Shown here piece by piece: positions 4,389 to 20,621 of a stretch of 64,000 nt of DNA. Both the position numbers and the translations under genes were made by a program. Source of the stretch: Setoptus koraiensis (lineage: Eukaryota > Animalia > Arthropoda); contig CM106585.1 in assembly GCA_048013815.1 (NCBI GenBank), forward strand, positions 4,650,001 through 4,714,000, in the 5' to 3' direction. Each line of letters opens with the position of its first letter. The first letter of the stretch is position 1. Under the pieces are notes generated by a model that was not told where the DNA came from, searched no databases, and saw nothing but the letters and a program-made list of their open reading frames with translations.

Positions 4389-5100
4389 GCGATGGGGTCA
4401 GAGTGACCTTTTGCTTGTTTGCGACTTCCACTTATTGTTGGCATCGCCGGTGTCGCCGGTGTCGCTGGCGTCGCCGGCAGAAATTGAATTTGCTCGGCAT
4501 CGCATGCATCCTCGCCGGGGTTTTCTCGCCCGATTCAATGATTGGAGCCATTGAATCGGATCGGATCGAGCGCGTCAGATGTCATTGGCAGCGCCAATGG
4601 GTCGCTTTCACTGCGATTAGCTGCAAACAATCCAGAGAAAACGCAAACGGTGCAAAGACAACGCAATCAGTGCAGAGACAAAGCAAACAAAGGGGGCGCG
4701 ACAGTCGCCACCTTGCAGCCGTTTAAACGATTCGCAACCACATTCGCATTGAATGTCGCACCTTGTTATTACATGAATAAATTGTTTATGTGCGTGCTCT
4801 CAAGCATGCAATTAGTGATTTGATGAGCCTGATTAACTGGCCGCAATGCGCCATATATCATGCACGCATATCATCAATTTTGCACAGGTAACCTGTCAAG
4901 CTGCATCAAGTCGATGATGTGCTATGAGTGGGTGCTCACCTGGTGTCACGTAACAGCTACCTGTGCCGCGCAGTGCATGACCAAGAGAGAGCGATAACAA
5001 ACTCTGACAAGCAGAGCCAGTTAACGCTGAAGTTGTGCGATGATTCGACAATTGTCATGATATAACAACAGCGAAAATCTCATGACATTCCAGCCACTCA

Positions 5101-5182
5101 CCGGCTATATACCGGCCATATACCGGCTATATACCGGCCATATACCGGCCATATACCGGCTATATACCGGCTATGTACCGGC
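5101..5182. repeat. 11-bp quasi-palindromic minisatellite (YATATACCGGC) x7
   Basis: Seven full units, alternating TATAT/CATAT with CCGG cores. Confidence 0.9.
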
Positions 5183-5439
5183 TATATATAGATAGATATA
5201 TAGATCACATTCCGGCGATGATATTGGCGCGGCATTCAGCGACATTTCTGTCCGCCCACGCCTGCCGACTTGGCAATGCCAAGTTTTCGGGCATTTCTCG
5301 AAAGGCAAATATTAACAGATCAATAATATTAATAGATAGATTAATAGAATGATCTTGTGGCTCGCGCCTGACTGATCTCATCGGCCGGTCCTCTGACAGT
5401 CGCAACGAGCCCAGGCCTCGCGCTCAAACTCTCGCGACT

Positions 5440-5607: not shown

Positions 5608-7077
5608 GTGCCCAAAAGCATTATTACTGCGGATGGGATCTCTCGAGACAATGCCCACAACTTATCGTAACATCGTCGCAGCAAATGATCGACATGTTTC
5701 AATCCGATTGATATTTGTATGTTTGATTGACAGTGCCCTGGGTAGTAGATCATTTTTTTTGCTGAACAATGCGCATTGGGGACTAATTAAAATTAATCAT
5801 GTCGTCCCCGTGGTCAACAATGTTAAGCGAGTGTGTCGACTATTAATCACAGCACTCACAAGTTGTGAGTCACAAGTTTGCAATTAACTCTATCGAAAGC
5901 AAACGCGTGATCAATTATCGACGGAGCTGGCATTGTTGCGCTTGTGTCAATTGTGTCAATTGTGGCACAAGCACAACAATTGACCAAGCACCAATTTATC
6001 CAATTGATAGCTCAAATTATTGCCGCTAATCAATCTCAATCCAATCACACATTACGTAACGTCATTATTAAACATTGCACAAGTGAATTTAAGAGGTCAT
6101 TTGTGCTAGTAACACTCGCTCGCCTTGCCTCAGCTCGACTGAACTTGCGACTAACAAACTTGCAACAATGTTGCCAGCTCAACTCAAACAAATCCGTCTG
6201 ACAGATGATGTCACGATGAGCCTAAACGATGCCTCAACAAACTGGTTACGCAACAATGAAAATGTTGCTCGTCATCGTCATTGGTCGTTATTGCTAACGA
6301 CCAGCAATGAGATTGCGCGTGACCAATCAATCAGAGCTAACTGGCGGCAGCAAGTCGCTGACCATTAACTACAATGCGGGCTACCATTTAGCTCACCTGT
6401 TGATGTTTGTACGATTGTGTGTTGGTGTGTTGGTGTGTTGGTATGTTTGTGTGGTTGTGTGGTTGTTTGGTTGTTTGGTTGTTTGGTTGCTTGGCCGCTT
6501 GGTTGCGTCGTCGATGTTGCACTGAGCAACTTTGGGCCTAATTGAGCCAACGTGGCGTCGCGCAAATCGTAACGGTTGTTAGATACTCAGTTAGATAATA
6601 GAGACATCGTTGCAAGCGAGCAGAGATAATGATTAATGATAATGCGCTAATTACCGATATTCACTGATTCACCGATTCACCGATTCACTGATTGTGCCGA
6701 TTTGCTGACTCGGCCAGCCAATAATCTGTTTACTGTTTCATCGTTATTGATTGCGCCATTAAGCAATATGGCAATGGCTTAATGATGCAATTGGCCAGTC
6801 ACAATTGTGTTGTGTCCTCGCACTGGCCACTGACGCAGCCAATTAAATCTCGGACTTGACGATAATTACAGCGGGCGCCTATTTAGCGAAGCGTCTGGCG
6901 TAATTGTTCGTAATTAGCCGAGACACGGGCGGCCTTTAATTGAACGTTTCACTCTCCTGTTCAGGCTGCCGGTCAGTGATACTCACAATGACGCTCAGTG
7001 ATATTTGTGCCTGTTTGCAACTATTTGTAGCAGCTCCGTTTGCTGCAACAAGTCGCCATGCTAATTGAGTCGCCCGC

Positions 7078-18125: not shown

Positions 18126-18757
18126 TTAGAATATATCGTCGTCGTATGAGACTAACTCCCTCTTTAGATCAAGATCTGGAGCTGGAACATTATTATCCTT
18201 TCTGCTTGCTATTGCAGACCATTTTTGTTCGACCTTTGTATCGCCCGACTTTTGAGTCGATACCAAGTTGGGTGCTCGAGATGGGGGTTTGAAGAGCCTA
18301 ACTGGCGATTTCTCCGCAGGTTTGTCAGAGGGTGAAGGGTTGCCGAAGGTGTCGGCGTTTGAAGGACCTGATAAGCGATCAGGAACTTTTCTTTTGAAAC
18401 CGGAGCCAACAGGCTTCCTCTCTGGTAGCTTTGATGATATTTGAGGCAACGCTCCGGATCTTTTTAATTTTTCAATCACTTTCTTTGCATCTATAGCGCC
18501 CACTTCGTTGGCAGACTTTTTCAATGTGAGGGTGGAGTGAACCACTGTGGGTTCAGGCTTGGCTGATTTCAATTGTATCAATGAAGCTCTCTAGAGGATG
18601 CGGAGTAAATGGAACAATTAGTCACTCAATCTGGTACAGTACAGAAAGCGGCTAGCCTTAGATTAGGTATACTGACCTTTCTTTTTAGTTTTTCATATTT
18701 TCTCCTGAGCGACGTCTCTTCGTCTGTCTCTTCTTTCGGGAAGCAAATGAAGACCAT
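18126..18757 (-). CDS. NELF-E: Negative elongation factor E, RRM-less (181 aa; exons 18757-18677 and 18590-18126)
   Basis: Spliced protein starts MVFICFPKEETDEETSLRRKYEKLKRK|RASLIQLKSAKPEP...KLKRSGALPQI...SGFKR, matching the NELF-E N-terminus as I recall it (fly MVYIHFP...EEEQMLQAKYQKLKKKK). It ends KWSAIASRK...KRELVSYDDDIF, like the conserved NELF-E tail. 86-nt phase-0 GTCAGT...CTCTAG intron with a GACTAAT branch-like site; AATAAA at 18114-18119. Confidence 0.88.
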
Positions 18758-19194
18758 TTTCGTTTGGGATTGGCGAAAATTTTTCTGCTGGCAACTAACC
18801 TCTTTGCCGTATCCAACTTTTGATCAACTTCTTCTAGAAAGAAATAATCATCCAGGAATTGTTTCTGGTCGAATTCGCCCAGCGATACGTATGGAATTCT
18901 GTTACGTTTGCCGTCACAATCAAAGGTATTTTTGTGTTGTTTGCAACACCCGACAGAGCAATAAAGCCGGCTACAGCCTGGACATTTGTATGGACTGTTC
19001 TCCGTTGAGCAGACACAACAGGGCTTGGTGAGTTGGGAATGGAATTTTTGCTCGACAGTGTCCTCTATTTGGCTGTCCTCCGAGTCGGCTATTTCTCCCT
19101 CCTCTAAATCCGAAGAATCGTCCGAGCAGTAATTGGACATCAAATTTTGCAGCCCGCTACTGGATGTGACAGGCGATTGGGGGATATTTTGCAT
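18685..19194 (-). CDS. ZNHIT6: Box C/D snoRNP assembly factor ZNHIT6/Bcd1-like, C-terminally short (169 aa)
   Basis: zf-HIT CCVCSTENSPYKCPGCSRLYCSVGCCKQHK followed by the Bcd1-type DCDGKRNRIPYVSLGEFDQKQFLDDYFFLEEV segment. Confidence 0.85.
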   Translation of the reverse strand: MQNIPQSPVTSSSGLQNLMSNYCSDDSSDLEEGEIADSEDSQIEDTVEQKFHSQLTKPCCVCSTENSPYKCPGCSRLYCSVGCCKQHKNTFDCDGKRNRIPYVSLGEFDQKQFLDDYFFLEEVDQKLDTAKRLVASRKIFANPKRKWSSFASRKKRQTKRRRSGENMKN

Positions 19195-19437
19195 GACAAT
19201 GAGGCTAATGAATTATCACATGTATCGTTTATGTTGTTGAAAAAGAGGGTTACAGGCCGGCAATTGCCATGATTGGCCGTGCGAGAAACAACATGGCTCG
19301 CATATGCTGCAATTGAATTTTGTGAATCTTGCGCAGATGCGCAGAGAGAATTTGCAAAAAGTTCGCCATGTCGTTACTCACACTGTGTGAGTGTGTAATG
19401 GCCAAACAAAAGTAAAAGCGCACGCCGTACAATCGCC

Positions 19438-19440
19438 AAT

Positions 19441-19483
<43 letters not shown>

Positions 19484-19819
19484 CATATATTGTATATAAC
19501 GCACACACACACACACACTTTTAGCAACATGGTGAGTGTGGAACGAAAGCGTGATTCACAGCAAGCGACCAACTAGACAAGCTGGCGGGCAGGGGCGGTC
19601 TGTTGTGGCTGTTGGTGTGTTTGCAGTTGTAGATGGCGTTGGCATTGAGCTGATCGGGCGGCAGGCGTTGTACGAGATTCGATGCGAGTGTGTGTGTGTG
19701 CGCGAGTGTGTGTATGCGCGCCTGCCACTCTGTGTGCGTGCGTGTGTGCGTGTGTGTGGTGCTGTGGTAGCTGTGAGCGGCACCGCACCGCACAGCCACC
19801 CTATAGTTGGTGTGAGCGA

Positions 19820-19888
<69 letters not shown>
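19438..19888. repeat. (CA)n tracts (19438-19518) and (GT)n tracts (19823-19888, plus interspersed) in a putative divergent-promoter region
   Basis: Dinucleotide runs lie between ZNHIT6 (minus strand) and the next plus-strand gene. Confidence 0.85.
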
Positions 19889-19889
<1 letters not shown>

Positions 19890-20621
19890 TGCGAGAGAAG
19901 TGTGTGTGAGTATCAAGCTAGCGGACGAACTGACGAACGATATAAGGAACATCCATTACCAGCACTTGGCTAGCTAACAACGTATATGAATGAATCAACA
20001 CAGCACAACGAGGACGAGGACAAATTTCCACAAGCTTCCACTGCTGCTGCCGTTGCTGCTGCTGCTGCTGTTGCTACTCCTTCTGTGAACATATCATCCC
20101 AATAATTATTATTATTATTACCACCACCACCACCACCATCACCACCACTACTATTACCACCCTTAACATTATTATTATTAATTATACTATTATTCTTATT
20201 ATAACTATTATCACTATTACCATTATCATTATTACTATCTTTACTATCGCCACAACTATTACTATTATTATTGCTATTACTATTACTAATATTACTATTA
20301 TTATTGGTTTCATAATTACTAACAAGCGGCACAAGAGAACGACAGAACGATAATAACTATTATTACCATTATTATTACTATTATTATTACTATTATTATT
20401 GTTTTACACATTACAAACATCGCAACACCAGCGCCAACCTCGTACCAGGAGCAACATTTATCATCGGCATCGACCATTTATACATCGTGATACATTCAAA
20501 ATTATAATAATCAATTCTAGATTATTGTTGTTGTTATACATTATACATTATTAGTTAGTATACACGTACCCATACACACACACACACACTCAACACACAC
20601 ACAAGAGCCATATTTAACGCC

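Follow-up and report, generated by a model that had tools for sequence, protein, structure and literature searches.

[quoted passage not shown] The gene concerned lies on the minus strand at positions 18126-18757 of a 64-kb stretch of genomic DNA from the mite Setoptus koraiensis, which was analyzed as a whole and is referred to here as the window. Human NELF-E consists of 380 aa, and its N-terminal region fixes it between both ends of NELF-B. What the RRM contributes to promoter-proximal pausing is debated; among the proposals are that it binds nascent RNA in a sequence-selective manner, recruits NELF, or takes part in the RNA-driven release of NELF. To our knowledge, work on RRM-less NELF has so far been limited to engineered complexes in vitro. 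The initial annotation of the window, made from the sequence alone, described the gene as encoding a NELF-E of 181 aa that had cleanly lost the RRM but kept both termini.

The coding region comprises two exons of 27 and 154 codons which, counted on the minus strand, indeed add up to 181 aa. Exon 1 (18757-18677) begins with an ATG at 18757 and encodes the block MVFxxFP...EE..L..KYEKLKRK. An intron of 86 nt (18676-18591; GT..AG, phase 0 after codon 27) separates it from exon 2 (18590-18129), which is followed, as read from the sequence, by a TAA stop codon (18128-18126) and an AATAAA (18119-18114). Exon 2 can be divided into an N block (residues 1-74; 18369-18590), which contains KPEP, DAKKVIEKLKRSGALPQI, and SGFKR and corresponds approximately to residues 30-99 of human NELF-E; a Pro/Ser-rich linker of 47 residues (residues 75-121; 18228-18368), which in our alignment (A5) occupies the place of ∼166 canonical residues; and a C block (residues 122-154; 18129-18227) with the post-RRM motif K-W-S-A-I-A and the tail R-E-L-V-S-Y-D-D-D-I-F. 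Thus, the segments listed in the initial annotation (the N-terminal basic helix, KRSGALPQI...SGFKRK, W-S-A-I-A, and the VSYDDDIF end) are all present. The description of a short P/S-rich linker inside one continuous exon was likewise accurate, as the reading frame of exon 2 is unbroken and the linker region contains 18% Pro and 16% Ser (direct count over exon-2 residues ∼69-119). Because exon 2 is a single open reading frame from the N block to the stop codon, and the neighboring downstream gene begins ∼260 nt past NELF-E, no further exon fits between the conserved blocks. The same gene structure was found in an independent Logan contig (L001; 84% amino acid identity) and in Fragariocoptes setiger (L002, from a GenBank assembly), which means that the gene is not an assembly artefact.

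For assigning the protein to a family, exons 1 and 2 were used as separate queries and never as one spliced protein. A word-indexed protein search returned just two relatives, a Logan protein (P0001; 81% identity) and a hypothetical protein from F. setiger, an eriophyoid mite (P0002), and exon 2 had no usable match in Pfam (E ≤ 10), in the PDB (phmmer), or in the ESM Atlas. Exon 2 comes up empty in such family searches because no Pfam model exists for the termini of NELF-E; the protein is not an orphan. When 1.84 billion representatives were searched exhaustively with a profile composed of the exon-1 rows, the exon-2 rows, and P0002 (A4), 19 matches were obtained at E ≤ 0.001. They included proteins named negative elongation factor E by their source, matched over profile positions 1-90 from their own residue 1, which stem from other mites (Dermatophagoides farinae and relatives, Dinothrombium tinctorium, and Halotydeus destructor), the bug Rhodnius prolixus, and the ostracod Notodromas monacha. 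Each of the full-length NELF-E matches (265-322 aa) carries an RRM_1 domain (Pfam; E 1e-10 to 1e-12).

Comparison by hhalign with a canonical NELF-E profile (A6; an alignment of seven canonical proteins) placed three blocks of the mite protein colinearly on the profile. Exon 1 matched positions 1-27 with a probability of 98% (E 1.3e-13), the front of exon 2 matched positions 30-99 with 96.7% (E 4e-10), and the C-terminal 33 residues matched positions 266-295 with 95.9% (E 5.6e-9). The tail encoded by exon 2 was 45% identical to that of D. farinae NELF-E (BLASTP; E 5e-6). In the reverse direction, a full-length HMM of canonical NELF-E was run against the six-frame translation of the window and the four contigs carrying short forms (L001-L004; ∼115 kb in all) and matched only exons of the NELF-E gene, with domain 1 covering the N block of exon 2. 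The mite profile itself, when searched against PDB sequences, did not reach human NELF-E and gave only weak noise (MED8). The canonical profile, however, did match human NELF-E in PDB entries 6GML and 7YCX (E 6e-59), and the match to 7YCX_h allowed mite residues to be mapped onto the human protein. By way of this arthropod profile, the mite protein retains the equivalents of human residues ∼1-99 and ∼332-372, without ∼100-331. The assignment to NELF-E made in the initial annotation is therefore supported both by the profile search, which matched named NELF-E proteins, and by the colinearity of the three blocks. Judged by its sequence, the protein is a NELF-E orthologue in an eriophyoid (gall or rust) mite.

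In the alignment with arthropod NELF-E that had been proposed along with the annotation, both ends align and the RRM region is missing. More precisely, the mite protein lacks GYQPF, LYESFV, and the RRM in its entirety (GNT.YV to ARRQP; A5 and HMM alignments). The claim of a cleanly lost RRM with both termini kept thus stands as to the RRM and the two ends, but not as to the extent of the loss, because GYQPF and LYESFV are also gone. As the annotation had predicted, a Pfam scan of the separate exons gave no RRM_1 match at E ≤ 10, and no Pfam RRM was found in any of the five short forms described below, even at E 10. With an RRM-only HMM of canonical NELF-E, no match below E = 1 was obtained in any of the six reading frames of the 64-kb window or of L001-L004, which, together with the continuity of exon 2, bears out the statement that there is no hidden RRM exon. 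An HMM of the middle region (the span of GYQPF, LYESFV, and the RRM) had no match in six frames of the same sequences either, and no second copy of NELF-E was detected in the 64-kb window with the canonical HMM in six frames. The AlphaFold model of exon 2 is of low confidence (pLDDT 59) and mostly disordered; short helices are predicted for residues 35-45 and 122-128, whereas the linker, with a low pLDDT, has no secondary structure and thus no hidden fold. There is a weak indication that S-R-A-P in the linker might be a remnant of the RRQP with which the RRM ends; domain 2 of the HMM match begins at residue 105. The lost motifs coincide with the RNA-crosslink clusters G94-P109 and K130-F136 of human NELF-E (PMC9068813), and the positions of GYQPF and LYESFV lie within the human NELF-B-binding fragment 1-138. 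An internal deletion in the stem of the eriophyoid lineage would have taken the central linker motifs and the entire RRM.

The part of NELF-E that contacts the cap-binding complex (CBC) is, by sequence, retained. In human NELF-E, the C-terminal peptide 360-380 binds the CBP20-CBP80 groove of the CBC via R362, Y367, and Y372; the Arg and Tyr of this peptide are conserved across all metazoan NELF-E, and Y372 is usually replaced by Phe or Leu (PMC5670239). Residues R144, Y149, and F154 of exon 2 reproduce this R-x4-Y-x4-aromatic spacing and are invariant in three mites. With the three contact residues kept at the human spacing and the hhalign match of the tail (95.9%), the C-terminal CBC tail that the initial annotation regarded as retained is indeed there as sequence. 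Upstream of it, K-W-S-A-I-A aligns to the canonical post-RRM motif W-x-x-[IL]-A, which is absent from the short forms of F. setiger, L003, and L004 (A5). ARS2/SRRT likewise has a C-terminal R...Y...F peptide, which competes with NELF-E for the CBP20-CBP80 groove (PMC5670239); the sequence preceding the peptide in the mite protein, however, resembles NELF-E and not ARS2. In the human system, an RRM-containing fragment binds the CBC with an affinity of 0.05 µM, compared with 3.3 µM for the tail peptide alone (PMC5670239). As the fragment with the RRM binds ∼60-fold tighter than the tail, the link of the mite protein to the CBC may be weak.

The position of the gene points to orthology as well. 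The phase-0 intron after codon 27 occurs in the window, L001, and L002 and also in D. farinae (L006) and H. destructor (L005), where NELF-E is canonical. A zf-HIT gene lies directly upstream of NELF-E in the window (minus-strand ORF of 169 aa from the ORF list, 18685-19194; Pfam zf-HIT E 4e-4, below the curated cut-off), in L001, and in F. setiger, and ∼1.3 kb from NELF-E in H. destructor. The zf-HIT neighbor and the shared intron position are thus the marks by which this is recognized as the ancestral NELF-E locus. Regarding the zf-HIT ORF itself, no BCD1-domain match was found within 18685-19194, whereas the H. destructor counterpart has 319 aa with both zf-HIT and BCD1 (L005 12169-13180). 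The 169-aa protein may be another miniaturized protein or a different member of the zf-HIT family. Just upstream of the zf-HIT gene, long (CA)n/(TG)n-type repeats extend over 19250-19980, appearing as His-Thr/Cys-Val in the ORF lists, and are followed by an Asn-rich low-complexity ORF (19970-20332).

The two genes are closely packed. The NELF-E ATG lies inside the 3′ end of the zf-HIT ORF, on the same strand but in a different frame, with an overlap of 73 nt (18685-18757). The overlap in L001 is likewise 73 nt (5741-5813), and in L003 the start of NELF-E overlaps a Pcc1 gene by 65 nt (4974-5038); the zf-HIT ORF of F. setiger appears to stop ∼35 nt ahead of the NELF-E ATG. A start within the upstream gene implies either a promoter inside the upstream coding sequence or cotranscription of the two genes.

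A 148-aa protein of H. destructor (P0012) was considered as a further short form and rejected, the short length being due to a split annotation. In the annotation of this species, NELF-E (L005 10001-11018) is divided between a 148-aa "Negative elongation factor E" and an RRM protein of 102 aa. Its RRM exon is intact: the ORF at L005 10488-11015, which follows that of P0012, contains the RRM (Pfam E 5.6e-12) plus the tail, so that H. destructor, a trombidiform mite, has a full NELF-E.

Altogether, five RRM-less forms were found, with lengths of 181, 178, 131, 119, and 112 aa. Two of them came from the exhaustive search and are intronless on their Logan contigs (L003, ORF 4974-5312, 112 aa; L004, 119 aa). 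Exon 1 of the window is identical to that of L001 and 63% identical to that of F. setiger. The NELF-E of F. setiger has 131 aa when the homologous acceptor at L002 6195/6196 is used. The GenBank model of this gene (GZH46_01044, "partial", L002 6103-6228) places the acceptor 33 nt too far downstream and uses an upstream ATG, by which 11 residues are skipped. In a tree calculated from 157 columns with the RRM left out, the five short forms constitute one clade (support 100/99), within which F. setiger branches first and the window together with L001 is sister to L003 plus L004; because the tree rests on 157 short columns, this inner order is tentative. Under such an order, the RRM would have been lost once and W-S-A-I-A later lost twice. 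Among the predicted proteins, absence of the RRM is a clade-wide state of eriophyoid-type mites and not private to the S. koraiensis genome. Querying with the RRM and tail of D. farinae NELF-E yielded 72 relatives, from sarcoptiform and oribatid mites, a scorpion, a millipede, crustaceans, a priapulid, and a mollusc. No match bore the name of F. setiger, a species with annotated proteins in the database searched, and no RRM-bearing eriophyoid NELF-E was among the database matches of either the exhaustive profile search or the RRM-plus-tail search. Between the window and L001, dS was 0.78 and dN/dS 0.10, which indicates that the gene is kept by purifying selection. Divided by part, dN/dS was 0.077 for the N block, 0.19 for the linker, and 0.081 for the C block. 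Loss of domains has been described for the genome of another eriophyoid, Aculops lycopersici (PMC7738191).

Canonical metazoan NELF-E, which in arthropods including mites has 265-344 aa (e.g., XP_046910800.1 of D. farinae), shares with the mite form the N-terminal block (approximately human residues 1-99), W-x-x-I-A, and the R-x4-Y-x4-aromatic CBC peptide, as well as the intron after codon 27 and, in Halotydeus, the zf-HIT neighbor. It differs in having the RRM, GYQPF, and LYESFV where the mite protein has the 47-residue linker; the mite forms of 131, 119, and 112 aa also lack W-x-x-I-A. Close parallels are engineered human complexes, NELF ΔRRM and NELF-E(1-138), in which the NELF-B anchor region is kept and the RRM is gone. 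Such complexes are stable, retain RNA binding via other subunits, and are able to assemble on Pol II that is paused. Human NELF-E 1-138 binds NELF-B stably, and human NELF without the RRM still binds RNA, via NELF-B and NELF-C (PMC4940160). ΔRRM NELF enters paused complexes as efficiently as the wild type, and the RRM contributes to RNA-driven release of NELF (PMC9068813). Unlike the engineered forms, the mite NELF-E is natural and under selection. Compared with NELF-E(1-138), it additionally has the CBC tail, but its anchor is shorter, without an equivalent of human residues ∼100-138. Because only the counterpart of human residues ∼1-99 is kept, as opposed to the tested fragment 1-138, binding to NELF-B is not guaranteed.

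Taken together, it is highly probable that the gene encodes an eriophyoid NELF-E orthologue from which the RRM and the central motifs have been deleted and in which the N-terminal anchor region and the CBC peptide have been retained. Such a mini-NELF-E would sit on NELF-B and form a short tether between NELF and the capped 5′ end of nascent transcripts, and direct contact with RNA would fall to the RNA-binding surfaces that human NELF-A/C and NELF-B are known to have. The mites would either lack the functions that depend on the RRM, such as sequence-selective recognition of nascent RNA and the RNA-driven release of NELF, or accomplish them by other means. Pausing without RNA binding by NELF-E, as put forward in the initial annotation, may reasonably be expected with such a protein. 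That eriophyoids run a complete NELF in which the E subunit has been reduced to a NELF-B anchor and a CBC hook, down to 112 aa, is slightly favored over its negation.

Other readings of the same data have to be weighed against this. The similarity to NELF-E could be due to chance or low complexity (Lys/Glu-rich helices) in an unrelated small disordered protein. The lack of a match in Pfam, of a usable match in the ESM Atlas, and of a PDB match with the mite profile would fit this view, as would the fact that some matches of the exhaustive search are Lys-rich repeat proteins (P0004 and P0005). However, three blocks in the right order and at the right protein ends, with profile-profile E values between 1e-9 and 1e-13, a shared intron position and gene neighbor, and a reverse HMM that matched nothing but NELF-E exons in ∼115 kb of six-frame translation make it scarcely credible. 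It is also quite improbable, if less so, that the gene is a truncated paralogue and that the canonical function is carried out by an intact NELF-E with an RRM, encoded elsewhere in the genome. The genome sequence examined here is one 64-kb window, which leaves room for such a copy. Yet the gene resides at the ancestral locus, with the zf-HIT neighbor and the intron after codon 27 of canonical mite genes; dN/dS is 0.10; five lineages show only the short form among the matches of the exhaustive search; and the RRM-plus-tail query returned no match named for F. setiger. Alternatively, an RRM may be supplied to the complex by a separate gene.

A somewhat less remote, though still unlikely, alternative is that NELF has been lost or dismantled in eriophyoids and that the mini-protein serves a NELF-independent role, for example as a stand-alone CBC adaptor or competitor. 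In its favor, the CBC tail is the best-conserved short element over all five forms, and eriophyoid genomes are known for the loss of genes and domains (PMC7738191). On the other hand, the N block is present in all five forms and is as constrained as the tail (dN/dS 0.077 versus 0.081). We know of no role for the N block besides anchoring to NELF-B.

A search of the literature found no mention of NELF in Eriophyoidea, including in the Aculops genome paper (PMC7738191). With 112-181 aa, the mite forms could be used directly as minimal constructs in complementation, binding, and structural studies, and they add a well-defined case of protein miniaturization alongside the streamlining of eriophyoid genomes. 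A clade that lacks the RRM and keeps both terminal modules under strong purifying selection points to the parts of NELF-E that are indispensable, which makes eriophyoid NELF-E a natural test of whether the RRM is needed. If eriophyoids do run a complete NELF with such a reduced E subunit, a whole animal would be able to develop without the RRM and without any of the RNA-contact clusters mapped in NELF-E, and the core function for which NELF-E is conserved would be the tethering of NELF to the capped 5′ end.
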